DNA of 64,000 bases from Mytilus californianus (lineage: Eukaryota). This document shows, piece after piece, positions 12,072 through 64,000 of the stretch. The DNA lies in contig NW_026262701.1 in the NCBI RefSeq assembly GCF_021869535.1, positions 21,514,001 to 21,578,000 of the forward strand, given 5' to 3'. The notes under the pieces were generated by a model, which ran no database searches, was not told the DNA's origin, and saw only the letters and a list, made by a program, of their open reading frames with translations. The stretch's first letter is position 1, and each line of letters begins with the position of its first letter. The position numbers and the translations under genes are program-made.

Positions 12072-12521
12072 TGAACCGTAATTTGTACGGAGCTTTGTAA
12101 ATTAGGTACTAGTATCCATTACAAACAAGGTTTGTCCTCAGATTTGTTGCTCATTGAAATATTCAATAAGGCCAAGAAGGATTTGTGGTGTGGCAAGATC
12201 TCATCCTTAAAGGTTACGTTTGTGTACGTGGGATTAAGATGGAAAACCCGTCAGACATTTTTTTCTTCAAATGTTTACATACGATTTATTTCACCTTCGT
12301 GTTTGTGTTTGAGGGCGATGGTTTTCTTGAAAGGGGTGCAAATGTTTTATTTGTATTTTGGTCAATGCTGTTTTCAAATCAATCAATCAGAACGATAAAG
12401 ATTGATAAGTACATAAAAAAGAAATTAAGAGGAAACACAAACTAAGCTTATTATTTATCGTTCATATCAATATTGACAGTTTATTTCCTCCTGTACTAAA
12501 TGTTATAAAGATAGCTTTGTT

Positions 12522-16546: not shown

Positions 16547-16590
16547 ACATCACTGAAGAGACATAAATTGTCGAAATCCGGATATGGTGT
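16547..16590 (+). ncRNA. Minimal type I hammerhead ribozyme (duplicate)
   Basis: Same sequence as 7707-7750, offset 8840 nt. Confidence 0.7.
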
Positions 16591-19053: not shown

Positions 19054-20519
19054 TGCTTCTAAATTAAGGAGAGGCTGATTGCTAAGAATTATCCTGTATT
19101 CTGGCTGACAATTTTCTGCGCTTTATATACATTGTTCAATTAACTCACTGCAAATCGAGAGAAAAAACAATTACACACATGTTCCTATAACAATAGGATT
19201 TAAAATGTAAATGTATTTCATAATCCGTTTTCCTTGTCAAGTTAGATGCAAGAATGAAAATTAAAAATATAAGAAATATTAAAAAAGTTGATTATTTTAT
19301 CTTTATGATTCATATTCATATTTTTATATTGCTTTTAGGTGACAACCTTATTTTTGTGTTTCAAACAAAGGCCGTTGCAAAGCATGCACTTACACATACA
19401 GTTTTTTTAAAAAGACGACTGCTAATTTAAAAATCAGCACATTTTAGATGGTTTTCAACAGAATATGGTAAGTGGATAGACCGTTTTTGTTGAACCCATG
19501 GTTTTTTACAATACTATACCGGTAATTATTTATGAGTTTTTCATTGGTCTTGCCCATATGTACTCTGATTAAAATTTATCCATTTTAGGCAATATCATGA
19601 TTCCAACAAAGTTATTGTTTTGTTCTGTATGTTCTTTTTCCCCAAACGTTAGCATTATCGGAAAAGAACTTACACAAAGTTTTCCGATTTCTGCATAGTA
19701 TGTACGAAACAAGTTCCTATCATACCTTGTATTTTGAATACAAAACTCGCTTCTACCTTCTGCTTTGACTTAACGTTGACTCCTAGAACATATATCAGGG
19801 TCTTAAAAGTGTGAAGAGTTTTAACTATTACGAGCTAACTAAACATTTCAGTCATAATGATTTATTTGTAGATCTAGTTTTGCTGATCTTTTCTCTATTC
19901 AAATTTCTACATATTATACTTTTCAAAATAAAAGGCAAATACGCAAAAGCAATGTCTTCTTTAAGGAGTCATGATTTCGGTCATTGACTTTTTTGTAGAT
20001 CTTTTCTTGCTGATCTTGCTGTTTCATATTTAAAATTATTTCCTATGCATAAAAGATTTCAAGACAAAAACGCAAAACATTTGTACAAATCGTCTTTAAA
20101 GGACAAACCTCAAATAAGAACGATTTCGGTAATGTTAGATTATTTGTAGTTCTTGTCTTGCTGATCAGTTTTGCTCTTAACGTTTTTCTCTATCTGTTAT
20201 AGTCTTAATAAAAATATAAAAGGCAAAAATGAAAATAAATTGGTAAAAGTTTTTATTTAACGACAATCAATCTTATAAAAAGTCGCAAAACAGATGTGAT
20301 CTAAATGGACATTATATAGGTTGCAACATTTTGAACATTTCTGCCCGCCAGATTTTCTCAATCTATAGCGGTTTCAAGATAACAAACACAAATGACATTT
20401 AAAACCTGTGTTCTATTTTTAGCCATGTCGCCCATGTTGGTTAGCAGACAGGATAATTTATTTGCAATGTCTTATGTATTTATAAAATAGTTCCTTTACG
20501 TTTATTACAGATTTAAAAA

Positions 20520-32193: not shown

Positions 32194-34019
32194 TGTTTTA
32201 TATTCAAACCGTTTACTGGAAGAATCTGATTACTGAGAATTACCTTCTACTCTAGCTGACAATTGTCTGAGCTTTATATATACTTTGTTCATTCAACTTA
32301 CTGCAGATCTGTTAATCAAGAGGAAAAATAATCACACGCATATTCCTGTAACAATAGGATTAGAATTAAAATAAAAATAGCTGTGCATTACATACTCTGT
32401 ATACATTGTCAAATTATTTGCAAGAATGGATATTAAAAAAAATTAAAAATTAAAAAAATGTAGATTATTTCATCATTATCATCCTTTAAAAGAAAAATAA
32501 AGCTGTTGTAATAAGTGATAAAATTGTTTCTGTTTTTAAAACAAATGCATAGCAATTACAAAACATTACTTTGCTACTTCACATAATCAATTATTCAAAA
32601 TGGAACAAAGCTGGTTATTTGGTAATTACCAGTGCTGGAGAGAGTTGAAAATGTGTAAACAAAGACGAAAAAGATGATTGTAGGCATTTTTTCAAAATAA
32701 AAAGTGAAAAAAAAATAATTTACGCTGTTTTAGTATGCGTAATACAAAAGTGCTCATTTCAAATACATCTAGGACGGAACAAAATAAACAGAAGGGTTCC
32801 TAGAGTCCTATACAAAAATCTGCACGACAATTTTTTTAATGAGAAACCGTAACAATTTATCAAAAATTAAATTGTGCATTTTCTCAGTTTAGTTTAGCTT
32901 TGTGCTGATGAGTCTTGATAAGGTGCTAGTGATTTGTGACAAGACGTTAGTGCGATTTGAATCAAGCATTACAGAATCAAAACCATTGGGCAAAAAATTG
33001 CAGTCAATCGTATTTTTGCTCCAATGTTTACCTTTAGACATCCGTTTCACGGTAAACAGTGCACACTGGGACATAGTCAACATTGGATTACATGCATTTA
33101 TTGGGGGTCATAAACCATGAACTGCTAGGGAAGTGAAATATTGCTACCTGCTGGGCCAATTAACAGGTGGTCATCCATGTGTGTAATTTTACTGCCACAG
33201 GTTCACTATTTTGATTCATATTTTGGACATGTAAAGGTTCATGTTACCTTTTTTTTACAGGTGATCTTTTGATAGGAGAAATCAATCAAACAGGAAATGA
33301 AAAAAGAACTTTGTTTGTATAATTATAGAAAATATTAATTAATTGTACATTTTCACAAATTATATGATCTAAATCATATGTAAATGCTATCTTGATTCAT
33401 TACTAATCAAAAGATCAAAATTATTATCGAGTAAATTATGTTCATTTATTATATATTTCAAATTAAAGTGCTAGGTCAAAGGTTAGAAGAAAAATAGCCA
33501 AATGTCATAATATAAACATTTTGTATGTTGTACAGTCATTGCTTGTTTTTAAACCCATAAGAAACAAAATTAAAACTTTTTCAATTATTTCTTTTCATTT
33601 TTATTCGAAAAGAACGTCGGAAATCATCTTTTTTGTTTTTGTTCACATATTTTAACGATCACCAGCATTGGTCATGACCAAATCACCAGCACATGACATT
33701 CTCTGGTATGACAACCTTACCCACCGTGTAAGTTTTTAATAAGCTTTCTTCTATTTTGAATAATTGAATAGGTGAGCGTTCGTCTATTTTGAATTAGTGA
33801 ATAGTTGTGCTTTCTTCTTATTTGAATAACTGATTAGGTGAAGTAGCAAAGTAATATTATGTAATTGGATTGCATTTGTTTAAAAAGTAAAAACGGTTTT
33901 GTCACTTATTACAATAGATATATTTCTCTTAATGAAGCATAATGATGAAATAATCTACTTTTTTGGGATTTTTTTATTCTTTCAATTTCCATTGTTGCAA
34001 ATAATTTGACAAGGTAAAC

Positions 34020-34223
34020 GGATTATGTAATGCACTGACATTTTATTTTAATTTTAATCTTATTGTAACAGAAACATGTGTGTGATAATTTTTCCTCTTG
34101 ATTAACAGATCTGCAGTGAGTTGATTGAACAAAGTATATATAAAGCGGAGAAAATAGTCAGCTAGAATATTGGGTAATTCTCAGTAATCAGCTTCTTCCT
34201 ACAAACGGTTTGAATATAAAACA
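34020..34223 (+). promoter_or_regulatory. Conserved mfp-3 proximal promoter (shown for copy D)
   Basis: GGATTATGTAAT ... CAGATCTGCAGTGAGTTGATTGAACAAAGTATATATAAAG ... TCAGTAATCAG ... AAAACAATG. The block is recognisable upstream of A, A', B, B', C, E and F, with TATA about 80 nt before the ATG. Confidence 0.7.
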
Positions 34224-37200
34224 ATGAAGAGTCTCAGCATAGTAGTTTTGGTGGCTTTAGTCCTTATTGGATCATTCGCTGTGCAAAGTGGTAAGTAAAA
34301 TTTGTCTTAGAAATATTGTTTATTATCGCTGTTTTGTGCATTTTTCCTTTGATCTTTTTCATATCATGCTACTCGCTTGCAATGGAAAATTATCGCAAGA
34401 AATTAAGGGTCACTTTGTCAATGTAAACATCAACAACGTCATAGGCAGAATAGCAATGAACAGATTACCAATGGTCTTTAAAGCTCGAGAATGTTTCTCG
34501 GCAACATCTCATCTCAGGGCTGTTGCCCTTTGATGAGATTGTAGCTGAAAAACACCCTCTCGTTTGAAAAAAAAACAACCATAATCCATAATTTTATTTT
34601 TTCATTCATTGCAGTTTTTTATCAAATGTCAAACAGACTAAGCATCTGTTGATATCTATTCTATGTCGGATTTTAAAAACATTTTGGTAATTGCAAATAA
34701 AAAAGTAGTCTCATATTGATAATATCGGCCAAAGAGTATACAATTTTAAACGAATTATTTTTTGTCTTTTTATCTTACTAAAACTGAACAAAATAAATAG
34801 TGTGCTTGCGCAAATTAAACATGCAAATTTTCTTTACTCTCTTATTTTACAATTTTAAGTATCTTTATTCATCATTGTATTCGTACAAATAAAATGCAAA
34901 CTAGGTAAATGTGCATTATTGACCATTTGATCAAAATATGACAAAATAAATGTGAAAACGTATCTAGATAAAATGATAATTGAAAGATATCTGTATATTG
35001 CAGGTTTGTTCCCAAATTAAAATATTCATTCAGTCCCAGTCATGAGGCTCTGTCATTTTATAGTCTTTTATCTCTTTTTAATTTTAGTTCATTTATATTT
35101 TTTCCGGAGTTTAGTGTGACGTCCATTTCCGATGAACTAGTATACATTATTGTTTAGGGGTCATTTGAATCCCGCCTCCGGACGCTGTATTTTTTTCGCT
35201 GTGTGGAAGAACTTTTGATGTACTAGGGCTGTTTTCTGCTGTTTGGTCGAGTTGTTGTCCCTTTGACACATTCCTTGTTTTCATTCTGAATTTATTCCAT
35301 ATTTAAATTTGTACTATTCATCATTCCTGGTAAATAACGAACTCATATTATTAGATTGGCTTACACTGCACTCATAAAGTCATGTCGTTTTAAGATATTA
35401 TTTTTGTTTTGCAATTTGAGACTAGACAACAAATAAATTTCAAGGCTAATTGAACATTATTAATGATTGATATTTTTTTTTTCAGATGCAGGTGGTGTAA
35501 GTTTAAAAAACCTTTAGTGTTTTATGTGACCTAGCAATAACAAACAATATAATGTATCGAAGAGGTATCCTTTACACAGTATACAATATTTGGTTAAATG
35601 AACAATATAGACATGGAACATAGAGATGAGAACCTTTGCTAAATGAAATATAGCATCTACAAGTAATAACATAAGTGGATAGACCACTTTCGAGTTCGTT
35701 GCATTTCCGTCAAAAACTTTGGTTTTAGTGAACATCATTCTTGCGTTTAGGTGCATCATCACTTCCTTCCAATGTTGAGCGAGCGGTTGACAAAAATATG
35801 ATGCTATATCACACGAATTATTTGGCAAATTAAATTCCTATAATTGATAATCACCACTGCTGTCATTAGGGAATTGTGATTAAGTACCTACGGAACAAAC
35901 ATTATTTCTAGTTTATCCTGCATAATGATGATCATGAAGACTCTTGGTGATCTTTAATAGTACAGGGATACAGGAGGGCCCCTCTATCTTTTAAATGACC
36001 TCATAAAGGCTTGCATAATTGACGAACTTTTCCGGTGAAGGACATAACACGGAAGTGGTCTATTGTATCAGTTTTATCTATCTTCCATTGATTCAATAAG
36101 AAATGTCTTAATGTTTTTAAATATCTGAAAATATAAGTGTTTCGAAGGAAATTATTTTCTTTTTACAGGCCGTACTGTGACATTACGTTGTTCACATCAA
36201 TTGTCCTAATGTCTTTTTTGATCAATGTGTCAATGGTTGCAAGCGTACTACTTGATAATAATTTATATGGAGTTTTAAAAATCAATATCCGACGCATTTA
36301 AACAATCCTTGGGTGATTGGTACTAAATAACCCTGCTATATGTTTACTTGTATGTCCATTTTAATGATCTCTAGCGGTAGATAGCTTTATGTTAATATTG
36401 TTGTGGGAATCTGGTGTCACAATCAAACTTGGACGTTCTTTTGAGATTTATTTGCTGTGGCCTTTAGTTTGTAATAAGATTTTGTGAGGAAATTTGATGG
36501 TATTCCTTAAACGCACTTTTTGCCAATAACACTTACTATGCGAAATGAAATTTTGTGTAGTATTTCAAGAAATGATTTTGTTATGTATCCCTGTATTTTG
36601 TGTAAATCAGTTAACGCTTTAAGGAGGCAAACTTTCTGTATAAAGTCAAAATGTTGTTGAATTTTGAAGCCCAGACTTCTTATTGCTTTAAATATACAAA
36701 GGGAAGATCGCAAAAAATATGCCAATACAGAAATATAGTTTTGTTAACTTCAGACAAAAAGTATGGGTGATGAGTGTGTTGTAGTATTTACAATAAGTGT
36801 TATGAAACCTGACATTTTCTCCCTACCAAATTTACCTCCAACACTTAATTTGATATGGACTAGTCAGTGTTGTTGAATCTTACGAAATTCGATTGAATGA
36901 AGTTACTATTGCTTCATCTCACCTGTTTTCCTGTTCAAATTTGTCTTGCGTATTTTTTGTCAGAACGGACATTTTATTGCGTAACGACTATGGTTTATAA
37001 GGACAGTGAGGTCAACTTTAGTTCTGAAGTTGAAAATTCTTTCATAAATAATAAAATAGCTTTGGTTTCTGGATTAAGAATTTTAATTATGAATTGTCTT
37101 TAGTTTTCTGTTCTCTATTCTAAAGGTTCATGTCGAACAAATTTACTCATTGATTATTTTTAAAAATATGATAAAAAACCATTTTCATCAGGGTCTGAAT

Positions 37201-39407
37201 AGGTTTATAGACTCGTAAATGATGGGAAGCAAAATCAAGAATAGAGAAAAATGGCCTATGATTAAGATACAGAAATGAATATCTGCATTCAGTCCCTCAC
37301 ACTTGATAAGTCATCATTTAACTTTTTTGAAAGTTCCAAATCTGAATGCCTATTGTTATATTCTGTTCATCTGAAAACAGGTTCAATTTCATTTCTTTTT
37401 ACAAACAATTGTTCTGTAATATAATTGACAATCGAACTATACATAGGACGAGTTCGTGCTATTTCTGTCAGTGAACATAGAGATACATTTAAAGCTTGTG
37501 TGTCTTAAAACAAACATCATTTTTCAGTCTTATAAAGTTGTTATCTTTCTAATTTTATCCAAATGAAAGCACAAAACCGATCTTTTTTGCATATAAAAAG
37601 TCATTTTTGATCACTTTAAGGGCGGATTCATCAACCATAAATAATATTGTTAGACCCTATAGATTCGTTTGATTTAATGTTTGATATATTGAATATAGAT
37701 ATTTGTCAATCGTTGAAGACAAATATTTTGACCACTAAATGTGTCATTGGCTGCTGTATGTACACTCATGTATTGGCCACATTGTGCGTGCATATTTACA
37801 ATTAACTTTTAATTTTAAACTTTTGATTGACTCTTTCATATACTCAAAGATTCATGGTCGATACAGGTATTCGAAATTGAAATTGGATATCCCTTTGTAA
37901 CATATTGATCTGATTTAATCAAAAGATAACAGGAACATTTGGTTTCACCTTTGCAGATTATACAATGATCTGATTGTTTATGAATCAAAGAAAGTCTTGC
38001 CATATACACACAATAGATGGATATCATAAGCTTTGCGAAAAACAACATCATTTCAAAAACAATCACAACAGATCATAGAAAAATATTGTAAAGCGACACA
38101 TCTTTCTTTATTCACCAGTTTCAGTATTGAACAACGTTCTTCATTTAAACCCAATTGTCAGGTGTTTCTAAATTTCATAGCAATATTCATATATCACAAC
38201 TGGAAGTAAGAAGAATGGTAAAAGCACAACTATTGCATATCGGTTGTTCATTCTGTTTGTGGCTGATATTTAGTCAGGATTTTTTTCTCTACACTTTTGG
38301 GGCATTCATACAACGTGATAGTTTAAAAATGCAACTTCCACTTATATCCACATGTTTACATACAGGCGTTTGACGAGTTTGCGATTCTGGAATTTGCAAT
38401 TTTTGTACTGTCATTATATTGTGTCTATTGCACAAAATCTTTGAGGATGTATTGATGGAGGGATAGATGGATGTTTAATGGCATATCAAATACATAATCA
38501 GGATGAGAACATGATTATATGATATAAAAATTAAACCCTACTTTGTACTAAACCAACACGATGAGCCGGAATTTTGACATGATAGTTCACAAGATAACAG
38601 TCAAACTGACGACATGTAAACCAACCGGACACATAATTCTGACTACGAACCGACTACTCTTAGCGTGCTAATCAGTGAAGCAGCAAATAGCAATTTTTAA
38701 GGCTTTGATTTAAACCTACCTGAGTTCAACCAAGGATCTCCCACACTCGAGACAAAAACACTACCATGAGACCACCAGGTTTTTAAAGAATCGTTCATAT
38801 CTACTGTTTTAACTCCAGTTTTTGGTGGGGATCGTGATGCATAGTCTTTAGTTTTCTATGTTGTGTTTTGTGTACTATTGTTTGTTTGTTTGTCTTTTTC
38901 CTTTTTAACCATGGCGTTTTCAGTTTATTTTCGATTTATGAGTTTGAGTGTCCCTCTGATATCTTTCTCCTATCTTGTCTAATGTTTTGTTCTCCTTGTT
39001 GTTCTTGACAGCTGCAGCAAGGTCAAAAACAATCAAATACAGTAAACATGTCATATAGGCATGTGTTTCCGGAATATCTTAATGTTGTGGAAAAAGCAAA
39101 ACAATTGAAAACCAACAAAAAACCCAGAAAAATGGGTACAAACAGAATAGCCAAAGTAATCTTGAATCATCGGCAAGTTTGTTCATACATCTTTATTTGA
39201 CTATTGATATTACGTTAAGTTTGAAATTCTTTTTATTTCTTCATCAGAATTGATCCTAACTTTTATCGTTTTTCGATATTTCAGAATTATTATCCAAAAT
39301 ATAATTATCCAAGGGGATACAAAGGTAGATATAACGGGTATCCCAGAGGAAATTATGGTTGGAATAAAGGCTGGAAGAAAGGTCGATGGGGACGAAAATA
39401 TTATTGA
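34224..39407 (+). CDS. mfp-3: Mussel foot protein-3, copy D (3 exons, 66-aa precursor)
   Basis: Exons 34224-34290, 35486-35496 (ATGCAGGTGGT) and 39285-39407 give MKSLSIVVLVALVLIGSFAVQSDAGGNYYPKYNYPRGYKGRYNGYPRGNYGWNKGWKKGRWGRKYY*. GT-AG sites intact; TATATAAA at 34137-34144; AATAAA at 39578-39583. Confidence 0.95.
38540..38780 (-). mobile_element. Decayed tRNA-derived SINE in mfp-3 D intron 2
   Basis: Reverse complement of the same SINE family (CGGACACATAATTCTGACTACGAACC; GCAGCAAATAGCAATTTTTAAGGCTTTGATTT) at the position corresponding to the C copy. Confidence 0.6.
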
Positions 39408-46131: not shown

Positions 46132-46949
46132 CGGACACATTAATGATATTTCACTTCAACACAAAAGTGCCTACTACTTGGCTTGTGATTTCCTCGGAGA
46201 CGTAGTGGCATCGACACAGTGGTTGTAAAAACTTATCAAAGATGCAAGGTTTATATCTTTGTACGATAGACGCGCGTTTTGTGTACATCAGTCTCATCAG
46301 TGACGCTCGAATCAAAACATTTTGCGTCTAAAGGAATGTTTTATTGAAGAAGAAAAACAGCATTAGTTGACTCCTTATCAAATTGTTTTTCTTAATTTCA
46401 TTTCATTTCAATTTATTGCATATCAACTTTTTTTATATTTTTTTTATTTTTGAATTAGTTTTTGTATAACTGAACACTTATTCACATAATTGAAAATGCC
46501 CTGTACCAAGTCAGGAATATGGCAGTTGTTATCAAATAGTTCGTTTCTATGCATGTTGGCGTATGTTTTTGTTGCACTTCAGTGTTCCTGTTGTTCCTTT
46601 GTTTTCCTCTTATAATTGATGTGTTTCCCTCGGTTTTAATTTGTAACCCGGATTTTTTCTCTCTCAATCGATTTATAACTTTTGAAAACCGGTATACTAC
46701 TGTTGCCTTTATATAACTGATCGGTTCATTTTCAATAATCGTATTTATCATGTTTATTATCATTACCTTTACTTAGAAAAAAAATTGTTTTGGCTGAGGG
46801 AAAGAGCGGGGGGAGTTAATTTGGTTTTGCTGATATATCTTTATTTTAGATCAATGATGGTTACTCCAGTTTAAAAATGTTCTTTTTTGTGGTAACATTA
46901 GATTTTCTTTGTTCAAAATTTTTATTTAGACACAAAGTTTTATCAAAGC

Positions 46950-47949: not shown

Positions 47950-48500
47950 ATTGGAGTTATTGTCCAGCGCCTGCATACGGAGTATATATCTCCCAATTGA
48001 TACGATATTCCCGGGCTTGTATTTCCTATCATGATTTCCTTGATAGAGGATTGCTGCTCACAAGGAAGCTATTAAACTAAGAGTTCCAAATGGTGAAGTT
48101 GAAATCATCCCTTCGTAAATTTTACGGACGCCATCACGAGTTGGTTGACCGTTATGGAATAACCGTTTCACAGATGATATCGGATATGTTCCTTATGTCG
48201 TAACTACAATACCCTTCCCTTTTCATTAATGTGACCTACCGAATTAGACTATTAACCGGATTTGTAATAACATAAGCAACACGACGGGTGCCACATGTGG
48301 AGCAGGATCTGCCTACCCTTCCGGAGCACCTGAGATCATCCCCAGTTTTTGGTGGGGTTCTTTTTGCTTAGTCTTTAGTTTTCTATGTATGTCATCTATA
48401 CTATTATTTTTCTATTTGTCTTTTTATTTTTGGCCAAGGCGTTGTCAGTTTGTTTTCGATCTACGAGTTTGACTGTCCCTCTGGTAACTTTCGTCCCTCT
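47950..48500 (+). mobile_element. 5'-truncated Penelope-like element 3' end
   Basis: GAGTATATATCTCCCAATTGATACGATATTCC...TTTACGGACGCCATCACGAGTTGG followed by the same 3' tail as the 52970-55660 copy. Confidence 0.85.
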
Positions 48501-48659
48501 TTTGCAAAAGTGCATGTAAGTTGTTCAAAACCAGCAATGACAGAGTTCCTGGAAATTAACATATGGTGAATTAAAATAATTTTTAAGCCATCACTCCAAT
48601 ATTTATCAAGATAAGAGGTATAAAAAGGGTATCCCCGTATCTTAATGGTTACGGCAAAG

Positions 48660-49367
48660 AAATTGAAAGCAAGGTATGATAGGAACTGGTCCAAACTATG
48701 ATGAAATGATAAACTTTGTGTCAGTTAATTTCCGAAATTGCTAAACGTTTGGGGAAAAAAAATAAACACAACAAAACAATAACATTTTGACAGACTTTGT
48801 ATCATGTTGTCACTTTGATATTGCCCTGAATGGATATATTTTAATCAATATGGGAAAGATCAATGAAAACGTACAAATAGATATAATATTGTAAAAGGCC
48901 ATGGTTTCAACAAATTCGTTTTTCCACTTACCAAATTCTGTAAAAAAACATCTAAGATATGCTGATTTTAAATATCTGAACGGGTAAGGTAGCAAAGTGT
49001 GGCTTTGCAATTATATTGCCTTTGTTTAAAATACAACATTTGTGTTGTCACTTATTACAACACCAATATAATGATTTTCCTTTCTTTTAATGAATCATAA
49101 AGATAAAATATTCCAGATTTTTGGTAGTTTTAAATTTTATTTTCATTCTTGCATCTAAAATGACAAGAATTACGGATTATGTAATATATTTACATTTTTA
49201 ATCTCAATAGGAACATGTGTTTCATTGTTTTTTCATCTTGATTTGCAGTGGGTTGATTGCGAAATGTATATAAAGCGCAGACAATATTCAGCCATAATAG
49301 AAGTATTTCTCAGTAATTGGTTTATTCCTTCTAACAGTTTGATTTAGAAGCAACGAATAAATTCATT
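48660..49367 (+). pseudogene. mfp-3 remnant F: B-type promoter and dead start codon
   Basis: Inverted homolog of about 10200-10900. TATATAAA at 49267-49274. TTTAGAAGCA ACG AAT AAA TTC A (ACG at 49353-49355) corresponds to B TTTAGAAGCA ATG AAC AAA TTC A. The sequence is then cut by repeat DNA from about 49370. Confidence 0.75.
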
Positions 49368-49429: not shown

Positions 49430-49960
49430 ACTTGTATCTAGAAATTGACTATGAGGGTCGGTTGAAAACAAAACTTTACGACAAAAGAGATGATTTTAGC
49501 TGCCCAATTGTGACCTTTTCATTTTTAAACCAAGAGTTTCAAATGGTGCAGTTGAAATCATAACTTTGTACATTTTACGGACGCCATCACGAGTTGGTTG
49601 ACCGTTATATATGGAATATCCGTTTCACAGATGATATCGGATATGTTCCTTATGTCGTAACTACAATCCCGTTCCCTTTTCACGAATGTGACCTACCGAA
49701 TTAGACTATTTACCGACTTTGTGATAACATGAGCAACACGACGGGTGCCACATGTGGAGCAGGATCTGCTTACCCTTCCGGAGCACTTGAGATCACCCCC
49801 AGTTTTTGGTGGGGTTCGTGTTGCTTAGTCTTTGGTTTTCTATGTTTTGTCATCTGTACTATTATTTGTCTGTTTGTCTTTTTATTTTTGGCCATGGCGT
49901 TGTCAGTTTGTTTTTGATCTATGAGTTTGACTGTCCCTCTGGTATCTTTCGTCCCTCTTT
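49430..49960 (+). mobile_element. 5'-truncated Penelope-like element 3' end (internally deleted)
   Basis: AAACTTTACGACAAAAGAGATGATTT RT segment plus the shared 3' tail. Track ORFs 49729-50000 are shadows of this tail. Confidence 0.82.
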
Positions 49961-52969: not shown

Positions 52970-55660
52970 ATTCATCCTCTTGGTTGCACCACTTAACTAA
53001 TAATCCTCATCTTGCAAAACCTCTCGGTGGACAAAAAGAAGACTAATAGATCCGACAATTGGGAACTAGACATCATATGGTTGCAATGGCAAAATTGATG
53101 GTATAGGTATTCTATCTAGTCCTTCCTGTAGGTCGGTGAATGTGATGAACATTTTCAACTTTACTCCTCAACGTAGACGCAGCCAAGGTCATTGTCATTA
53201 TACATCACCTTCTATCCATGATGTATCTATTAATGACCTGCTGCCATTTATACAAAAGCCATCAGGTATTCATCACATTCGCACGAAGCTTTATGTATTA
53301 TCCCTTTCAAAACTTCATTCTCTGTACAACTCATGTTTGGAAACCACTGTTACAAACCCCCATTCAAACCAATACAAACTTGCAGCTATCATCTCGGATA
53401 TTTCAAGTCACAGACTTTTCAAACCAATTCGCATTGCAAAAGATGAAAAGGAGAAAAGATCCTTTCGAAAACTTTCCTTCGCCAACAAAGGTCTCGATGC
53501 CATCAACTTGGGCACTATCCTTCATCATAAATCAGTTCACTTGAAAATACCTCCCTATTTTAAAGATCAGTCTCTACCTATCATTTTTATACCTATACCA
53601 AACCAATTGTAACTAAAATTTCAATTACAAACACGTGTTGCAGGATCTTAATATTGACGACTTCGAGTCTAAACCTCCTGATTGCACCTTTGTTCCCAAT
53701 TTATATATGATCCGGCTATCCACGTTATTACTGGTGACCTAAACATTGTCAATAATACTTCTCTGCGAAATGTGTTATCCGAAGGCCCGAAATATCGTGA
53801 GCTGAAATCCATCAATTAGAAACACAACTTCAAAATACTGATGGATTCAGCCGAGGATTATACCTGGCAATGTGTTAAACGCGAGAAAGAAGACGAAGAT
53901 AATCTTTCCGAATGGGTTAAGGCTGTGAGGTCATTGATACAAATCAGAATTAAAAAACTGAATGGGTCTATGAATATCCATGTTACATCAATCTTTAAAG
54001 ACCCAAATGCTGCAAAACACCTGTTCTACCTCCATGACAAATATGTTGTTGTCCCTGCAGATAAAGCCCCAAACAACATCGTGTTAACCACATTATATTA
54101 ACTGCTTGATAAATGAACTGGGTATTAACAATTCACTTGGAAACTCAACTTATACCCTCATGACACTTACCAAGGAGGAAATCCTATATAATCATAGGTC
54201 TGTTCTATGTTATTTTGGAATTTCAACCAAAGATGAAGAACTGGATATTCCCTCACTGTATTGGATACCCAAACTACATAAGTGTCCTTACAAACAACGT
54301 TATATTGCTGGGTCTTCCAAGTGCTCCACGAAACCTCTTTCTAAATTATTATCATCAATTTTAACAGCAATCAAAGCCGGGCTTCAAAGTTATTGTGAAA
54401 CTACCTATTCTAAAGGTGGCGTGAATCAGATGTGGATACTAAAATATTCCAAAGATCTTTTAGAATACATACAATCTAAGGTACTTTCATCTTGCAACAG
54501 TATTAAAACATTTGACTTTTCTACACTTTACACAAGTATTCCCAATTCCAAACCAAAAGAAAAATTGAAAGAGTTGGTCCTGCTTTGTTTCATAAAAAAG
54601 AATGGCCAATGTAAATACAAATCTTATCATAGGGAGGGATAAATCGTACTTTGTAAAAAATAACTCTGATTCAAACAAAAAAGTTCTCTGAAACTGATAT
54701 TAACAACATACTTGTTACGTTTGGGGGACGTGTTTTTCAACAAACAATCGGTATTCCCATGGGAACCAACTGTGCTCCTCTTTTTGCCGACTTGTTTCTT
54801 TATTCATATGATGCTGACTTCATACAGGAACTTTTTAAAAAGAAAAAAAAGTTAGCAGTATCCTTTAACTTTACTTTCCGCTATATAGATGATGTTGTAT
54901 CACTACATAATTCAAAATTTGTCGACTACTAGTATGTTGAACGCATCTATGCATCTATGCATCTATGCAATTGAACTTGGGATAAAGGATACGACAGATA
55001 CAGTTAAGTCTGTCTCATATCTTGAATTACATATAGAAATTGAAAACAAAATTTTACGACAAAAGAGATGATTCACTTTTCCAATTGTGAACTTTCCATT
55101 TTTGTGTAGCAATATTCAAGCAGTGCCTGCATACGAAGTATATATCTTCCAGTTGATACGATGTTCAAGAGCTTGTATTTCCTATCATTATTTCCTTGAT
55201 AGAGGGTTGCTGCTGACAGGGAAGCTATTAAACCAAGAGTTCCAAGTGGTGAAGTTGAAATCATCACTTCGTAAATTTTACGGGCGCCATCAAGTTGGTT
55301 GACCGTTATGCAATATCCGTTTCACAGATGACAGCTGATATCCTCCAATTGTCTTAATTACCATCCCATCCCCTTTTTAACGAATGTGACCTACCGAATT
55401 AGACTTATAACCGGGTTTGTACTAACATGAGTAACGATACGGATGCAACATGTGGAGTAGGATCTGTTTACTCTTCCGGAGCACCTGAGATCACCCCTAG
55501 TTTTGGTGGGGTTCGTATTGATCAGTCTTTAGTTTTCTATGTTGTGTTTTGTGAACTGTTCTTTGTCTGTTGAACTTTTTCTTGTTTAGCCATATCATTG
55601 TCAGTTTACTTTCTACTTATGCGTTTGTATCTCCCTTTGGTATCTTTCGCCTCTCTTTTT
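52970..55660 (+). mobile_element. Degenerate Penelope-like retroelement, endonuclease remnant upstream of RT (Naiad-like order)
   Basis: Broken frames encode LYWIPKLHK, TFDFSTLYT, GIPMGTNCAP and FRYIDD, then the C-terminal KSSLRKFYGRH and the shared 3' tail (TGTGGAG(C/T)AGGATCTG..TAC.CTTCCGGAGCACCTGAGATCACC). A decayed QKED**IRQLGT..(S)YGCN motif at about 53032-53087 resembles the end of a PLE GIY-YIG domain. Multiple stops and frameshifts. Confidence 0.8.
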
Positions 55661-55921
55661 CGTCTTTGTTTTATTTTTTTTAATTTCCATTCTTGCAAAT
55701 AATTTGACAAAGTATACGGATTATGTAATACATTGATATTTTAATTTTAATTTTGATCTTATTGTAACAGGAACATGTGTGTGATAAATGTTTCCTCCTT
55801 ATTTTCAGATCTGCAGTGAGTTGATTGAACAAAGTATATATAAAGGAAAAAATTGTCTGCTAGAACAGAGGGAGCTTCTCAGTAATCAGATTCTTCCTGC
55901 AAACGGTTTGAATAGAAAACA

Positions 55922-57135
55922 ATGAATAATCTCAGTATCGTAGTTTTGGTGGCTTTGGTCCTTATCGGATCATTTGCTGTGCAAAGTGGTAAGTAAACGT
56001 TTGTCTTAGAAATATTGTTTATTATGATTTTCCATCCTTTAAAGTTTTTTTTATTAATTTCCAAACAGACTAAGCGTCTGCTGATATATATTCTATGTCG
56101 GATTTTAAAAATGTTTAGTAATTGCAAAAGTCTTTGATAGCAGTCTATATGAAAAAGTAGCGTCATATATTAGATTTGCTTACCCTACTCTCATATAGTC
56201 ATGTCTTTTTAAGATATTATTTTTGAGTTTCAAATAAAGGACGAGACAACCAATTTATTTCAAGACTAATGTGATATTACTTGTAATTGATATGTTTTTT
56301 CAGATGCAGGTGGTGTAAGTTAAAAAATGCCTGTAGTGTTTTAAGTGATATAACAATAACAAACAGTATAATCAATTGAAGAGGTATTCTTTACACAAAA
56401 TACAATATTGGCTAAATTGAACAATATAGAGATGGTACACAGAGATGAGAACCTTTGTTTACACGAAAGTATAGCCACTTCAAGTAATCACATAAATGAA
56501 TTGTATCAGTTGGATCAATCTTCCATTGATTCAATAAGAAATGTCTGAATGTTTTTAAATATCTGAAAATATAAGTGTATTTCGAAGGAAGTTATTTTCT
56601 TGTTCAGGTCGTATTGTGACATTACGTTGTTCACATCAATTGTTCTTAGGTCTTATCTGATCAATGTCTCAATTGTTGCAAGCGTACCACTTGATAATAT
56701 GTTATATGGATTCTAGAAAAATCAATGTCCACTGCCTTTTTAATATAATAGTTTGGTAATGGGGGCTGAATAAACCTGATAAATGTTTATATGTCTGTCC
56801 TAATTCATGATCTCCAGCGGTTGATAGCCTTATCTAAATATTGTTATTGGAGTCTGGTGTTACGGTACATTTTTTGACGTTCCTTTGAAATTTATTTCCT
56901 ACTGTCTTTAGTGTGTGATAAGATTTTGTGAGGGTATTTGAAGTTTGTTAATCATGGTTTTCTTAAATAGATACAAGAAGATGTGGTATGAGTGCCAATG
57001 AGACAACTCTCTATCCTAGTTTGTAATTTTTAAAAGTAATCAGTTTTTCCCTACCTAATTTATCTCTAATATTTATTTTGATATGGACTGGTCATTGTTA
57101 TTGAAACTTGCGGAATTCGTTTAGGTGAAGTTATT
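55922..57135 (+). pseudogene. mfp-3: mfp-3 copy E: intact exon 1 and micro-exon, no exon 3 in the window
   Basis: Exon 1 at 55922-55988 (MNNLSIVVLVALVLIGSFAVQS), micro-exon at 56304-56314 (ATGCAGGTGGT), intact GT donors, TATA at 55835-55844. Intron-2 similarity to C and D runs to about 57135, where it meets the mfp-5 stop codon. I found no TGGAATAAAGG-type exon 3 on the + strand downstream. Confidence 0.8.
57072..57077 (-). terminator. Candidate mfp-5 polyadenylation signal
   Basis: AATAAA on the minus strand, 60 nt after the mfp-5 stop codon. Confidence 0.55.
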
Positions 57136-57137
57136 TA

Positions 57138-60100
57138 CTAACTGCTACCGCCTCCATAATATTTCTTGTAATCTTTTCTGTGGTATTTTCTAGCTTTCTT
57201 AAGATATTTGTACTTTCCAGTGCGCTTATATTTGTAATAGTATTTCCTTCCTTTTCCGTAATACTTTCCCTTGTATCCATGCCCGTGATATCCGTGCCAA
57301 TGACTTCCAGATGGATAGTACGCATTGCCTGGGTAAAAGGCGCCACTGTAATCCTGTCGAAAATAAATCCTGCTATTACACTGTACCGAATGAATATTTC
57401 AATATAACGCAGATTTGAATGGTAATTCAATTCTAAAGAAAATTTTTATAAATTGATTTAACGATATAAAGGGAAATATTTCTTTTTGTTGCGTCTGACG
57501 TCACAAATGGTGTATAAGCAGACTAAGCAATGACAGGTTTGCTTTGGTAATAACAAGCCTTCTTTGATAAGGCATTATTTATATTGTTTGATTTGATTTC
57601 TCAATTTGTCGCCTGTAATAACCATACATTTTTTAATGTACGTCCTTCTCTTTGACTGCTGTTATTCCACTCATCAATAGAGAGAAAAAAGTTATATACT
57701 TTAACACTGTATAATCCTGCTAGAAATTAATGTGCCTACCCCCAAGCAAGGAACCTCGTCATTGGTTCATATCTATTTTCTTTTCTTTCATTAAGGACGT
57801 ATGCGGTTCAATAAGAGTCTTTTTTATTTCTGTTTGTTTGCTAATTGTGTTGTTATGGTGCCGTTTACATATAACTGACTTCATCATCGAATATCATGCA
57901 CTACGTGAGTAAATTTAATAGCAAGTATTCGGTGGTTCATGGTGCATATACCCCGTAAACAAAAGCGGTGATTTGAATGTTAATTATTGTTTAAATAACA
58001 CTCAAGTATATTACATCTTTCGCTTGACGGCTCAGGAGATATAAAAACTTACTGAGAATATGAGCCAATATCCCCTGTGAAGATCCCGAATTACATATAA
58101 TGTCTAAAATAAACCCGTTGTCTACACATTCTTTTACACAATTATATATGCATACAGTACGCGATATCCGGTAGAATGCAATATCTATTGTTCTATTCAG
58201 ATTGATTTATTTATATGCTTGTTAATATATTGAAATGTCAATTTGTCCAGACATTTTTTACACAATCATATCCATGTGATATTATTGCATTCTAGTTTCA
58301 TATTTTGAATATATATTATTGTCATACCTTTTAATTTGCGAATAATGCAAGTAGGTGAGTATCGCAATAATAAGAACTCGCATTCCGAAATCTGACACAT
58401 ATATTTGTATGCAGTTTTTCTTGTTTTTGCAATAATTATTCTCACATATTGGTCTGTCATGTCGAAATAGCATTAATAAATGCACGCAATAATTTCTGAA
58501 TTTACAGTATATGATTAAAATACTGAAAACATATCCATTCAAATGGATACTTTAACATTATTTCTAAGACAGACATATCCATTCAAATGGATACTTTAAC
58601 ATTATTTCTAAGAAAGAATAAACTGATAAAAAAGGCTGTGACGAATGCGATAAAGGGTAAATTTGTAAACTATATTAGAGAAATCAATTTATTATGACCA
58701 AATTAGCGGATGAGCGCGGCTCTCTGGAAGGGTAAACTGACTCCGTTCTATCCGTATCTTAACATATATTCAGAATAAATTAATGATTAAAATTAGTGAT
58801 AGGACGTCAAAACAAAAGCCGACTGGTAGATGGTTGTCTTAGCTATTATATGTCCAACACTAAAGGGTCGTCCTGTCAATATAATGGAATTTGATGAGAC
58901 TGTCATACAAGTGAGAGGGTAGCTAGCTGTAAAACCAGGTTCAATCCACCATTTTGTACATAAGAAAATGCCTGTACCAAGTCAGGAATATGACAGTTGT
59001 TATCCATTTGTTTCATGTGTTTGAGCTTTTGATTTTGCCATTTGATTAGGGACTTTCCTTTTTGAGTTTTCCTCGGAGTTCAGTATTTTTGTGATTTTAC
59101 CTGTTAGTTGGAAAGGATTTATAGATCCACAGCATCGTACGCACGTTTTAATTCAGCTTAATAGAAAAAAAAAACTAACCAGTTCATGGTTTATTGATCT
59201 GTAAGTTTTTTTCATATTTGGATTTAAAGTTTTCAAAAGTTTTTACACACATTTAAAAAAACATATATAAATGAAAAACGAATCTGGAGGTTAAAAATTA
59301 TCTGTTTTTATCCGGAAATTAGTTAACTATATGCAATATTTGATTCGGGCCATTCGTAATTGGATTTTTGTTTAACCATTATATATCTCTCAGATACTTA
59401 GAATACTTCCTATCTAATATAAATTGCCAAGATACATTTTGGAAAGTAACCGGAATCATGCATCGTAATTTACTTGCTACGAGCAAAACAACAGGATCCG
59501 GTGGTTGAATAGCAACTGCCAAATTTTCTCAAGCGCCTGTCTTCATCATGGTTTTTGTACTTTTTTGTATGAGCATAATATTCAGAAACTTATGTTTCAA
59601 CACACTCAGGCAAAGATGACCTTAGACGATGCGAACTAGACGTATCACCTATTTTAAAGAGTGATGCATGCATACCTTTACTGGAATAGTGCATATGTCT
59701 ATTTAAACGAACAACCCCTTTGAAACAATATCTTTGATTACAAGAAACATAAGATGCAGGCTCATTTAAACGTACAAGCTGCATTTTAATAATAGACAAA
59801 AACAAACGCAATTTATTTTAGCAAAAACCTTTTACGTGTCAGGAAATGTATCTCTGTCGGTTGTAATGTGTGCGCCTGTGTTTGAAGTACCTGTTTGATG
59901 ATTTTTTTTTTAAAATCCACATTTAAACAAAGTCTTTTTAGTATGACTTCAATCATGCTATTGATATTTCTTTATCTAATACGATTTAATTATTAAGCTT
60001 TAGATTATTTCATAAATGGAGAATATAGTAAGCAAAACTACAGTTAACTTAAAATATTTTGTGACATACAGGTCTTTCGTTTATTTACATAAATTTTCTA

Positions 60101-63100
60101 GTTCATAAGCGGCGTTGCTGCCTTTACTTTATATACGATAACATGCCTTTCGTGATTTTTTCATTGCTTGATTTGAATAGTATGTTGTTTCTATAATGAT
60201 TATCCAATAGTTTGGCTAAATTTTTTTCTTTGATAAAATTTTGTCCGGAATCGTTGGAAATATAGTGAATTATTTCAAAAGTCAAAACTACGTACTTTCG
60301 TGTGCTGCTGCCATTTTCTGCAAACATGTTTTTGTGAGCACAATCTTGACTGTATGAATTATTCTATTATATAATAAAATAATCATAAAATATACTTACA
60401 TCATATCCTGAGCCTACATCTACAATATACATTAAGCATTTCAAAAATCATTCGGCAATTTCCATACATGTATACGAGTTAATAATTTAATCAGTATCTT
60501 AACTTTGTAAGAAGACTGTGTATACATTTACTGATACAAAAGTCAATTGTAAACAATCTGTATGGTCTGATAAGGAGAAAGTGACATAACTATTCATCCA
60601 TTTTCAAAGATTAATACAACGGAATATAAATTCCTATATTTTCATTGTTATCATTTCTATTTTTCAATTCGGCTTTTGATGGAAAAGAATTTGAACAACA
60701 AGTGTTTTCCATCAGTTACTGCAGTGCAATAGCCTTTCAAAGTTGATGTAAAAGAATCAGCAACAGCAACTTTATGAATTACATTTTTTTTAAATAAAAT
60801 CTGATTTAAATACATCCGTTATAAGTTCTCTTCTAATGATAATGACTCGAAGGTGTGTATCATTAAATAAAAGTATAACCCGAAAAGGTCCTCGAAACAG
60901 TATGAAAACAAAGCCGTGTCAAAACCTTGTACACATGTCATGTATTTCTATCAGGAAGCTTTAAAAGACAGTTATATTAACAATATCTATTTGCTCATGA
61001 TTAATACGATTGAGATATACCAGCATTTTTTGACATTATAGACGTAAAAACAAACAGACACACATGGGAGTAGAAATAATCTTATCCTGCAATTAGCACT
61101 TTTCCAGTGATTCAGTGCGTTGATAGGGTGTTATCCTTTGCTGGTAAAATCATCAAAGAAATCAGGCTTATAAATTGCAATGCCTGATGGGCAATTTGTC
61201 TCTTAAGACTCATCAGTGGCACACAAATCAATACAATTTTATCTTCCCAATTGTGAACTTTCCATTTCTATGTATCAAAATGTCAGCAGCGATTGCAGAT
61301 GGAGTATATATCTCCAAGTTGAAACGATATTCCAGAGCTGGTATTTCCTATCATGAATTTCTTTATAGATGTTGCTGCTTACGAAAGAGCTATTAAACCA
61401 CAGGTTCCAAGTGGTAACGTTCAAATCATTCTTTCGAACATTTAAGGATTCCATCACGATTTGGTTGGCCATTATAGAAAATCTGTTTCAAAGATAACAT
61501 TGGATATGTTCCGATTAAGGTACTACAATTCCGTCCTCTTTTCCTCGAATGTGATCTACCGAATAAGACTTACTTACATGACCAACATGACGTGTGTCAC
61601 ATTTGGAACAGGATCGGTATGCACTTCCGGATCACCTGATATCAACCTTAGGTTTTTACGGGGTTTTTTATGCGCAGTCTTCAGTTTTTTATGTTGTGTT
61701 TTGTGGACTTTTGATGGTTTTTTGGTGGTCTTTCGTTTTTAACGATGGGGTAGACAGTTTGTTTTCAATTTATAAGTTTTACTACTTTCAATATCTCTTT
61801 GGTATCTTCCGCCTTTCTTTGAAGGCAAAATCAAATACAAAATTAAAGTTCATACAAATGTATCACTCATTATATGATTCACTACATATTTGATATGCAT
61901 ACAAATGTATCATTCATTATATGATTCACTACATATTTGATATGCAAAAAATATAGACGATTTGTACCTTATATTATTTCATTATTAAGTGTGTGTTATT
62001 AATTTCTTTATAATTATGTTGGTTTAAAATTGGTTAATTATTATGAATTTTAGTCATCATTACTGTCTTTTCAATATAAAAACTAACATTTGCACCGACA
62101 TCTGCCTTTCATACATCCAAAGAAGTTTGTTTCTCGATAAAAAAAAATTAAAATAATGGAAAATTTCCGCTTAAATATTTTATTTTTATTCTTGTTGTTG
62201 GAAATTGGGAAATATCGAGTCACAAACACATTACACACAAAATATAATTCAAAGGTCAAAATGAGTATTGGATTTGATTTAAAAAAAAAATGATAATTTC
62301 CATTTGCTTTTAATCCGATAAGAAAAAAAATTTTCATCTTAATGTAGGCAAAAAATAACTTATATGTAAGTAATATATAAATCAAAGTATAAAGAATTGT
62401 AGATGATTTGAAATAACAGTCGCGTCTAGTCTAACGATTTAGAAACTGAACACGGAATTATGGCGTGACCAAATAGTTTTTTGCCTCCACCTCCATAGTT
62501 GGTTTGCATGTATTTGTCCCCTATAGTGACATGTAAAATGAGACAAATCACTGTCACAGTTCAGAATATTTTAGTCAGATGAAGCGATATAATACTCTTA
62601 TGATATAAAAGATGAAAAGTTATAGTCGATTTTTTATGTGTTGTACAAAATCTAAGGTTTTATTCGCCAAATCAAAATTGATGACAACGGTTTTTACTGT
62701 TGTATTTCTTAACCCTGTTTGTTTCGATCATCTAACATCTCACTTTTCTTTTATATTTAACAAAATATTTGGTCCAGGAATATTTGATTAAGTCAATTCG
62801 AAAACTATCTGGTCTGCTCATTAAAATAAACCTCGTGCGTTAATACCTAACATATGACATATTACGGTCACCATCATATTTCATTGTTTCATAGTAAGTG
62901 TGTCACAAATGATAGTTCACATATTTCTCTCAATGTCTAAAGTTGTGTTACGGATGTGACCGTTATCGAATGTAACGTTTTATCGGTTTTTTAAAGAACA
63001 ACAATTATTCCGACCTCAAATTTACCGAAAAAGAACTTTCACTTTTTTTCTTATCAAGGAAATATGTGTAAGATAAATATTCAGAGAGTCATTAGGTATT

Positions 63101-63413
63101 CCAAGGGGTAGTAACTGTCCCTTTGCACTGGTCGTTCGGAATATGGCTGAAATATTTCAACTGGACGTTGAAAACCTGAAATATGTTCTAATGAACAAAT
63201 ATATTAACAAGATTGCATTTACATTTTTTGATAATAGCATTGCTGTTGCTGATTAAGAAAACAAAAATCTAAATTGGTTATCATCGAAGATAGTTTTTCA
63301 TTTATGTCCATTATACATCATATGATAAAACAGTGTTATGGAAATATAGAATTACCGATACAAGCTGCTAAAGTTAAAAGAAAGAGCACCAAGACTACAC
63401 AACTAAGCTTCAT
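57138..63413 (-). CDS. mfp-5: Mussel foot protein-5 (3 exons, 97-aa precursor)
   Basis: Exons 63413-63356 (58 nt), 60419-60400 (20 nt, ATGTAGGCTCAGGATATGAT) and 57353-57138 (216 nt), with GT-AG introns, give MKLSCVVLVLFLLTLAACIDVGSGYDDYSGAFYPGNAYYPSGSHWHGYHGHGYKGKYYGKGRKYYYKYKRTGKYKYLKKARKYHRKDYKKYYGGGSS*. The C-terminal YKYLKKARKYHRK.YKKYYGGGSS is the mfp-5 signature. AATAAA at 57077-57072. Confidence 0.96.
58529..58613. repeat. 44-nt-period direct duplication containing a small palindrome
   Basis: ACATATCCATTCAAATGGATACTTTAACATTATTTCTAAGA at 58529 and 58573. It contains TATCCAT-TCAA-ATGGATA. Confidence 0.9.
58880..59101 (+). repeat. Abundant interspersed repeat (unclassified)
   Basis: AATGCCTGTACCAAGTCAGGAATATGACAGTTGTT...GAGTTCAGTATTTTTGTGATTTTAC. 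Partial copies at about 1200-1330(-), 8745-8885(+), 39785-40030(-), 46495-46715(+) and 49370-49430(+). Confidence 0.8.
61215..61820 (+). mobile_element. Penelope-like 3' fragment in mfp-5 intron 1
   Basis: ORF 61175..61396 reads FPIVNFPFLC...GVYISKLKRYSRA, followed by a decayed copy of the shared 3' tail. Confidence 0.8.
61851..61946. repeat. 47-nt direct duplication
   Basis: CATACAAATGTATCA(C/T)TCATTATATGATTCACTACATATTTGATATG twice. Confidence 0.9.
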
Positions 63414-64000
63414 GTTGGCTAAAACTATGAGCTTTAATTGAATTGTTCTGTTGTTATATTGCATTATGAAACAGATGGTAATTGCACGCAAAAATTAACA
63501 ACAGGATTATAATGTAAAACATGCACAATGCATGAAAGTGCTCGTTTGACTTTTCATCGTAAGACGATGTTTTACAACATAAATATAGAGACGTAGGTTT
63601 ACAACATGATTATATTGTTACTTTTATTTAAAGAAAAAACATCTTAAGTTGTTTCCGTTGTTTGATTGTATTTCTACAAGGTGATCGTTCACAACTCACG
63701 CTAGAATGGTTTCATTTCACAGCCAATAATGCAATGTTAAATATGTTATGAACTTGAATTAAACTACTTCATTAATAGATATGCAATGTTAAAGTATTAA
63801 TCCCAGTTTCAAGCAAGAAGAATTATATTTGCAACTGTATTGCTCTCGTATACTTATAATTACTTTCTCTACTATTACAGTCAATTCCATTTTCTCGTCG
63901 TTATACAAAGGCTTGATACATTTTAGAAAGGAAAACACTTCACCACTAAAAAATTTGATATCAAAACTTTTCATATTTCGAGGAACAGATATGAATAGAA

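Follow-up and report, generated by a model that had tools for sequence, protein, structure and literature searches.

An antisense mfp-3 intron as the probable source of the mfp-5 3' end in Mytilus californianus

The mfp-3/mfp-5 gene cluster

Among the interfacial adhesive proteins of mussels, mfp-5 is the richest in Dopa, and its main model is Mytilus californianus. We analyzed a 64,000-nt stretch of the M. californianus genome (the window; contig NW_026262701.1 of GCF_021869535.1, identical in sequence to GCA_021869535.1, record JAKFGE010000005.1), which holds the mfp-3/mfp-5 cluster of this species, together with 9.46 kb past its end (locus L001, to position 73464; about 73 kb in total). The subject is the 3' end of mfp-5, the 3' untranslated region (UTR) and poly(A) signal of which had been placed by an earlier note on the window in the antisense strand of mfp-3 intron 2 sequence. 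That note had offered two explanations: either mfp-5 recruited its 3' end from an inverted mfp-3 copy, or the ancestral unit was an overlapping mfp-3/mfp-5 pair, of which decayed antisense mfp-5 exons are left in mfp-3 introns.

A composition scan of the window found four mfp-3 genes (A to D) by their mature-peptide exons, and mfp-5 is encoded by three exons on the minus strand:

3684-3869, minus strand: mature-peptide exon of mfp-3 A (composition scan)
12525-12710, minus strand: mature-peptide exon of mfp-3 B (composition scan)
27016-27219, minus strand: mature-peptide exon of mfp-3 C (composition scan)
39225-39404, plus strand: mature-peptide exon of mfp-3 D (composition scan)
57138-57353, minus strand: mfp-5 exon 3, 71 codons and the TAG stop (translation)
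60400-60419, minus strand: mfp-5 micro-exon of 20 nt, coding with 1 nt of exon 1 for D-V-G-S-G-Y-D (pattern search, in agreement with protein P0001)
63356-63413, minus strand: coding part of mfp-5 exon 1, with the signal peptide MKLSCVVLVLFLLTLAACI (sequence and P0001)

The product of exon 3 is identical (100%) to the M. californianus RefSeq protein of LOC127702696 and shares 71% identity over exon 3 with mefp-5 (UniProt Q8WTE8, GenBank AAL35297). Both identity and layout mark the gene as the mfp-5 orthologue, with three exons, the 20-nt micro-exon and a locus that aligns with those of M. trossulus and M. edulis at exon 1, exon 3 and the upstream intron edge; the three-exon layout, of phase 1/0, was read directly in M. 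californianus only. The protein ends in GGGSS, and the TAG stop codon (57140-57138) is followed by an in-frame TAA (57137-57135). Protein searches with a word index and with full HMMER gave nothing beyond the M. californianus RefSeq protein, the cluster of mefp-5 and a synthetic fusion of fp-3 and fp-5. The RefSeq protein P0001 begins at an ATG located 17 codons ahead of the MKLSC signal peptide of mefp-5 (63413-63464, minus strand), and the annotated start probably lies too far upstream.

A truncated fifth mfp-3 copy lies tail-to-tail with mfp-5

The stretch 55655-57135 is a fifth mfp-3 copy, here called E, which lies on the plus strand, has no exon 3 and is convergent (tail-to-tail) with mfp-5. 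Its parts, and their counterparts in C and D, are as follows:

55835-55846, plus strand: TATA-box-like motif of E, about 75 nt upstream of the ATG (sequence)
55922-55988, plus strand: E exon 1, with an intact signal-peptide coding part (22 codons and 1 nt) followed by a GT donor (open reading frame scan and sequence)
56304-56314, plus strand: E micro-exon, 11 nt, intact (pattern search in E, D, C and A)
56315-57135, plus strand: truncated intron 2 of E, 821 nt, the reverse strand of which is the mfp-5 3' flank and 3' UTR (blastn)
57108-57135, plus strand: last ~28 nt of the E block, common to C and D and not to A/B (alignment)
35497-36905, plus strand: counterpart of the E block in intron 2 of D, from which the intron runs a further 2.3 kb to exon 3 at 39242 (blastn, pattern search)
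29870-30918, minus strand: counterpart of the E block in intron 2 of C (blastn, pattern search)

The 5' region of E containing the TATA motif matches D 33958-34326 at 88-90%. Exon 1 of E (MNNLSIVVLVALVLIGSFAVQSG) has 7 differences from that of D in 67 nt and is recognizable as an mfp-3 exon 1, and the micro-exon (ATGCAGGTGGT), located between AG and GTAAG, is the same as that of D and completes the signal-peptidase site.

The earlier note had given the shared block as 56315-57135. This part is indeed colinear with mfp-3 intron 2 of D and C, and also of A/B; the start has to be moved, since the homology begins at about 55655 and takes in the mfp-3 promoter, exon 1 and the micro-exon. With 55800-57800 as a blastn query against the whole window, 56163-56501 and 56500-56941 of E matched D 35343-35680 and 36062-36497 (82% identity; E-values 6e-87 and 5e-120), and 57041-57133 matched D 36813-36905 (81%). 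Matches to C covered 56163-56967 (C 31061-30267; 72%, E-value 2e-131) and 57073-57135 (C 29932-29870; 89%), and 56163-56964 matched A and B at 75% (E-value 2e-156). The micro-exons of E, D and C lie at 56304-56314, 35486-35496 and 30929-30919, and place the starts of intron 2 at 56315, 35497 and 30918, exactly as the note had put them. Across 56315-57135, identity was 77.4% with D, 75.0% with C and 73.9% with A. Because E is about equally far from D, C and A (77, 75 and 74% identity), it is not a recent copy.

No mfp-3 exon 3, which codes for the mature peptide rich in Tyr, Gly, Arg, Asn, Lys and Trp, was found on either strand of 57136-73464 by composition scan, tblastn or nhmmer profile search. 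Thus, E is incomplete as an mfp-3 gene, being a truncated copy. Genes C and D have before exon 3 a segment of ~2.3 kb that A and B are without, and the homology common to A-D ends at D 36868-36885. As the terminal ~28 nt of E are present in C and D only, E is a C/D-type copy that was cut ~20-28 nt into the C/D-specific segment. This segment was considered as a transposon and the idea rejected: it has no terminal inverted repeats and no open reading frame longer than 76 aa.

A relic of an mfp-3 promoter is found at 48670-49365 on the plus strand. It matches E 55679-55929, ends ~7 nt into the coding sequence and is followed by a dispersed-repeat copy at 49525-49960.

The homology breaks off beside the mfp-5 stop codon

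In 40-nt windows, E is 75-88% identical to C and D as far as 57134 and at background level past 57135. The windows and the alignments agree with the earlier note that the match ends at 57135, two bases from the mfp-5 TAG, and the mfp-5 stop codon adjoins the truncated end of E within 0-2 nt:

57136-57137, no strand: breakpoint, two bases outside both the mfp-3 homology, which ends at 57135 (C, D), and the mfp-5 orthology, which ends at 57138

If E and mfp-5 preserved an ancestral overlapping antisense unit, and the C/D introns held decayed antisense mfp-5 exons, similarity should run on past this point, as the earlier note had seemed to see by eye in the mfp-5 coding tail. Short matches, such as AAAATAC and AGCA, do occur past the junction, the identity in forced alignment is slightly raised (45-52%) in the first 80 nt past 57135, and upstream of mfp-5 a piece of C/D intron 2 is found again (see below). 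However, local alignment controlled by shuffling places the similarity at chance level: Smith-Waterman scores of the exon-3 antisense strand against the C/D continuation were below the dinucleotide-shuffle mean (z -0.5 to -1.1, p 0.69-0.89), and extension anchored at the junction gave p 0.45 for D and 0.75 for C, with a score of 200 for the positive control, C against D. In addition, tblastn of the exon-3 peptide with filters off found nothing in D 36906-39225 or C 27219-29869. In C/D, the shared intron piece is oriented like intron 2a, and beside E it points the other way, so C/D cannot be a decayed form of the E/mfp-5 layout, and the 3' ends of mfp-5 in M. edulis and M. trossulus are without antisense mfp-3 sequence. 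We therefore reject the overlapping pair, which these results leave hardly credible.

Such an abrupt change could also arise from assembly, through a chimeric contig join at 57135-57138 that hides a different true mfp-5 flank. Paralogues and repeats cluster in this region, and none of the DNA contigs listed bridges 57135. Against this stands the absence of a repeat at the join, the nearest repeat piece ending at 57020; DNA depth is continuous over 57100-57299 in two runs, no loose end at 57135-57140 is among those reported, and the DNA runs contain 45-69% of the sampled 31-mers of 57030-57353. Moreover, the UTR of the M. edulis and M. trossulus genes (see below) was not found anywhere in the 73 kb. 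We consider an artefact very improbable.

The E block is mfp-3 sequence and not a dispersed repeat

Copy number was assessed from DNA depth in runs X17 and X19, which come from different studies, in 200-nt bins with matches at at least 90% likeness. Depth over 55700-56899 was 17-58 in X17 and 8-21 in X19, in line with the baseline in single-copy bins of the mfp-5 gene (23-37 and 11-23, respectively). As this depth is that of single-copy DNA, the E block is not a dispersed repeat. Many genome copies were found only for two stretches, 56975-57020 and 55500-55659, which belong to the following elements:

55078-55659, no strand: dispersed repeat copy directly upstream of E (self-blastn)
56975-57020, no strand: hyper-abundant dispersed repeat piece, 46 nt, inside the E block (depth, loose ends, alignment)

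Further copies of the first repeat lie at 47965-48503, 49525-49960 and 61244-61820 (self-blastn), and depth over 55500-55699 reached 3e5-8e5 in X17 and X19. The 46-nt piece is not present at that position in C and D. Bin 56900-57099, which holds it, had a mean depth of 1.46 million in X17 and 0.6 million in X19, and loose contig ends occurred at 56975, 57011 and 57020 in all runs.

These two high-copy elements, in a cluster rich in repeats, are what speaks for reading the whole block as a dispersed repeat or transposon that sits in mfp-3 introns and beside mfp-5. However, the depth of the block is single-copy in both DNA runs, its colinearity extends to the mfp-3 promoter, signal-peptide exon and micro-exon, and within the 73 kb it was found only in mfp-3 units. 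A repeat is thus an explanation to which we give next to no weight, and the claim that the shared block is mfp-3 sequence stands, except for the 46-nt piece.

Many X17 and X19 DNA contigs join 55659 to 56966-56976, and 58509 to 56975. These joints are weak evidence that, at other places in the genome, the 55078-55659 repeat and the 46-nt piece adjoin each other within a single element; the shorter side of the joints is only 22-31 nt, and in the window the two parts lie 1.3 kb apart with the 5' half of E between them.

The mfp-5 mRNA ends inside the E block

Run X1, kept as contigs (Logan), covers mfp-5 at a mean depth of 103,659 over 57100-57299 (exon 3), compared with 25-86 over the mfp-5 introns and 0-3 in the bins of 56100-56899. 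The kind and tissue of this run are off record, and its RNA nature is inferred from the depth ratio: since a ratio of ~100,000 in exon 3 to 25-86 in introns cannot come from DNA, run X1 behaves as a foot-like transcriptome, and the values fit RNA of a secretory tissue. Thus, mfp-5 is still very highly expressed in this transcriptome. Because depth collapses from ~100,000 to 0-3 below 56900, the mfp-5 mRNA must end between 57137 and ~56900, within about 240 nt of the stop, in a stretch made up entirely of E-derived sequence and the small repeat piece. Of the runs with raw reads, X5 alone was recorded as RNA; its reads fell on repeats and none on mfp-5, and it is probably not from foot tissue.

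The nearest AATAAA to the mfp-5 stop lies in the block, as the earlier note had claimed:

57072-57077, minus strand: first canonical AATAAA past the mfp-5 stop, at +61 nt, E-specific (hexamer scan, alignments)

No other canonical hexamer occurs within 240 nt, the next AATAAA on the mfp-5 strand being at 56896, +242 nt from the stop. At the alignment column of 57077-57072, the scan and the alignments bore out the variants that the note had given, with AATAAG in C, AATTAA(G) in D and AATACG in A. Because G occupies the sixth position in C, D and A alike, a single G-to-A change would, by parsimony, have made the E hexamer canonical. This AATAAA likely directs the polyadenylation of mfp-5, the RNA end being bounded only to 56900-57137.

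The flank might be antisense mfp-3 intron and mfp-5 might nonetheless use a nearer non-canonical site, the AATAAA at 56896 or a spliced 3' exon. Mean X1 depth in bin 56900-57099 was 1,748, compared with 103,659 in the next bin, a drop that a very short UTR could explain. However, the high-depth X1 contigs also leave 57300-57353 uncovered; as this stretch is certainly exonic, the contig limits reflect allelic divergence and short unitigs and not RNA ends. The scarcity of canonical hexamers also counts against a different site, and none of the reported joints leads from the exon to another place. We regard another 3' site as unlikely, though it deserves more weight than any of the alternatives considered above.

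In the region of 57100-57353, the mfp-5 alleles of run X1 differ markedly from the reference, with a fixed C-to-A at 57282, and the introns are only 93-95% identical. This divergence fits strong allelic or copy variation in mfp-5.

Some X1 contigs fall on E itself. One that aligns to 55988 goes on with ATGCAGGT, the start of the micro-exon, and a 186-nt contig of low depth starts 2 nt inside the micro-exon and extends into intron 2 (56306-56471); either may derive from a paralogue. Taken together, they give a hint of transcription, and of splicing at intron 1, for an mfp-3 copy with at least 90% likeness to E. The low-depth contigs at 56306-56471 and 56815-56989 (depth 3-3.6, strandless) may represent E pre-mRNA, mfp-5 read-through or DNA carry-over. 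E is probably at most weakly transcribed.

The 3' UTR of mfp-5 differs in M. edulis and M. trossulus

Starting from the mefp-5 protein cluster, we reached genomic loci of M. trossulus (L002) and M. edulis (L003) for comparison. M. edulis has two mfp-5 copies, of which one ends at L003 14334, where a premature stop cuts it four codons short, and the other at 106516. The M. trossulus gene and both M. edulis genes align with exon 3 and the adjoining intron edge of M. californianus mfp-5 at 76-87%, and all alignments end at 57138, the last base of the mfp-5 stop codon. The three genes of the edulis complex have in common a different 3' UTR of ~110 nt with its own AATAAA, and over 1.8 kb the M. edulis and M. 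trossulus mfp-5 flanks share 85% identity. No match to the first 134 nt of this UTR was found in the 73 kb of M. californianus; from +134 on, the flank consists of repeat copies with many matches in the window. The stretch 46517-46714 was considered as the displaced original mfp-5 flank and rejected, the edulis/trossulus flank matching there being such repeat copies. In alignment, M. californianus thus agrees with the mfp-5 orthologues as far as the stop and, past it, with the antisense strand of C/D intron 2. Furthermore, mfp-5 of the edulis complex stands in tandem with mfp-3 genes and is not convergent with them, and no antisense mfp-3 sequence was found at the 3' ends of the M. edulis and M. 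trossulus genes.

Because the orthologues stop aligning at the stop codon and carry an unrelated UTR, the junction is most likely a breakpoint of the californianus lineage that removed the ancestral mfp-5 UTR. The junction can be taken as derived because E is a truncated copy, and truncation is necessarily derived.

The two M. edulis mfp-5 copies (L003 9826-16104 and 102414-107823) lie 92 kb apart and are 86-95% identical, the first reading …KNYY*GGSS. A Helitron-like gene of 2,983 aa is located between them. The M. edulis RefSeq isoform X1 (P0003), with a span of 96 kb, seems to combine exon 1 of one mfp-5 copy with exons of the other.

Origin of the mfp-5 3' end

Of the two explanations in the earlier note, recruitment from an inverted mfp-3 copy is the one borne out, by the sharp break, the truncated E in antisense, the different UTRs of the orthologues and the RNA end inside the block. 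We conclude that mfp-5 probably obtained its 3' end from the antisense strand of intron 2 of the truncated copy E, through a breakpoint in the californianus lineage. A rearrangement in this lineage would have cut mfp-5 from its ancestral 3' UTR, and a near-canonical hexamer on the antisense strand of E, made canonical by the G-to-A change, would have taken over polyadenylation, a change that may have helped.

In its simplest form, the history would be an inversion of ~9.26 kb, from 57136 to ~66396, with one break in intron 2 of E and the other just past the mfp-5 stop. Beyond the end of the window, at 66397-66551 (L001 6914-7068, reverse strand), lies a relic of a distal mfp-3 3' UTR with its poly(A) signal, in the orientation of E (nhmmer E-value 7e-19). 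The mfp-3 downstream flank continues colinear after this relic to ~66912, and there is no exon 3 ahead of it. A distal piece of intron 2 specific to C/D lies at 64895-65246 (L001 8219-8570) and matches D 38452-38779 (nhmmer E-value 8e-59). This piece is inverted relative to E, in the orientation of mfp-5, and is located 1.5 kb upstream of the mfp-5 ATG. It had no match in 116 kb of M. edulis and one 59-nt match in M. trossulus, at L002 3622-3680, upstream of mfp-5, and is treated as low-copy. It was considered as a tRNA-derived SINE, and ARAGORN and Rfam gave nothing. Thus, one C/D-type mfp-3 unit has its 5' half and its 3' end in the same orientation at a distance of 9.26 kb, with mfp-5 and the flipped intron piece between them. 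A single inversion is proposed because it accounts for the orientations of the 5' half of E, the UTR relic and the flipped piece.

M. edulis has an mfp-3 5' half without exon 3 (L003 5315-5617), which precedes one mfp-5 copy by 4.4 kb and shares its orientation. This arrangement resembles the layout predicted before the inversion; orthology of the M. edulis copy with E could not be shown.

Several points weigh against this account. The comparison covered the californianus lineage and the edulis complex, and its polarity rests on the truncation of E; with no contig across the junction among those listed, the join rests on the published assembly. Only the contigs of one presumed RNA run cover mfp-5, and neither a poly(A) site nor the strand is visible in them; the high-depth X1 unitigs are short, and bin 56900-57099 is inflated by the repeat. 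As for the inversion, the 1.15 kb between the inverted piece and the second break is without homology to C/D intron 2, no exon-3 relic was found between the piece at 64895-65246 and mfp-5, and no inverted repeats were found at the two proposed breaks. The UTR relic at 66397 was also tried as the old mfp-5 UTR, and the similarity was not significant: it shares a TTGATA(T)GAATG motif with the edulis-type UTR, but the comparisons gave p 0.09 and 0.53. Given these gaps, more than one event is likely to have been involved. A single inversion is possible, at somewhat less than even chances, and a history of several steps is at least as likely.

Other features of the cluster

Genes mfp-3 A and B sit on an 8.84-kb tandem duplicate with 99.92% identity between the units (2418-11259 and 11259-20099), so alike that the duplication is very recent or else the assembly has placed two haplotypes in series. 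Each unit holds a second signal-peptide-like exon (MNKFSLTVMLALVLIGLFPC...), at 10213 and 19053 on the minus strand, adjoining a copy of the mfp-3 5' region (10035-10889). This exon could belong to another secreted-protein gene or be a decayed mfp-3 head.

Discussion

It is a known type of event that a gene's 3' UTR and poly(A) site are replaced when a rearrangement or insertion occurs, their role passing to an AATAAA that was cryptic or came from a transposon. The case of mfp-5 follows this pattern in that the coding sequence was kept, the UTR appears to have been lost at a breakpoint and a near-canonical hexamer in non-coding DNA would have become the signal. Replacement of a 3' end at a rearrangement is thus not a new mechanism, and mfp-5 is a fairly ordinary case of it. 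What is unusual is the donor, which in place of a transposon is an antisense intron of a neighbouring paralogue in the same adhesive cluster, and the position of the break, within 2 nt of the stop.

Like mefp-5, the M. californianus gene keeps the exons and the upstream intron edge by which the loci align, whereas the edulis-complex genes differ from it in having their own ~110-nt 3' UTR and in standing in tandem with mfp-3. E, for its part, resembles the truncated relics that occur in tandem clusters, being one of several partial mfp-3 copies (48670-49365 in M. californianus; L003 5315-5617 in M. edulis). Unlike the other relics, it retains both small exons, and its truncation point is the end of a functional neighbouring gene.

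The locus also resembles a cis-natural antisense pair, with the promoter, first exon and splice sites of E facing the mfp-5 3' end and an overlap possible. Unlike the genes of such pairs, E is without a terminal exon, and over its intron RNA depth does not exceed 3.6, compared with ~100,000 for mfp-5, in contigs that are strandless. One could imagine that E has a live promoter in the same gland cells, that its transcript, with exon 1 spliced to the micro-exon, runs through mfp-5 exon 3 in antisense, and that the convergent pair tunes mfp-5 output in M. californianus only. We consider this quite improbable; if true, the rearrangement would have made a sense/antisense pair controlling the main adhesive primer protein.

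Full-text literature searches found no description of the genomic organization of mfp-3 and mfp-5. The junction marks how the structure of the mfp-3/mfp-5 cluster has changed between the lineage of M. californianus and the edulis complex. It also carries a warning for annotation and expression work, as UTR-based probes or quantification from M. edulis or M. galloprovincialis will not transfer to M. californianus. Most likely, mfp-5 lost its ancestral 3' UTR, yet it is very highly expressed with a tail from the reverse strand of a paralogue's intron, and the locus would thus provide a dated natural test of how little 3' UTR such a gene needs.

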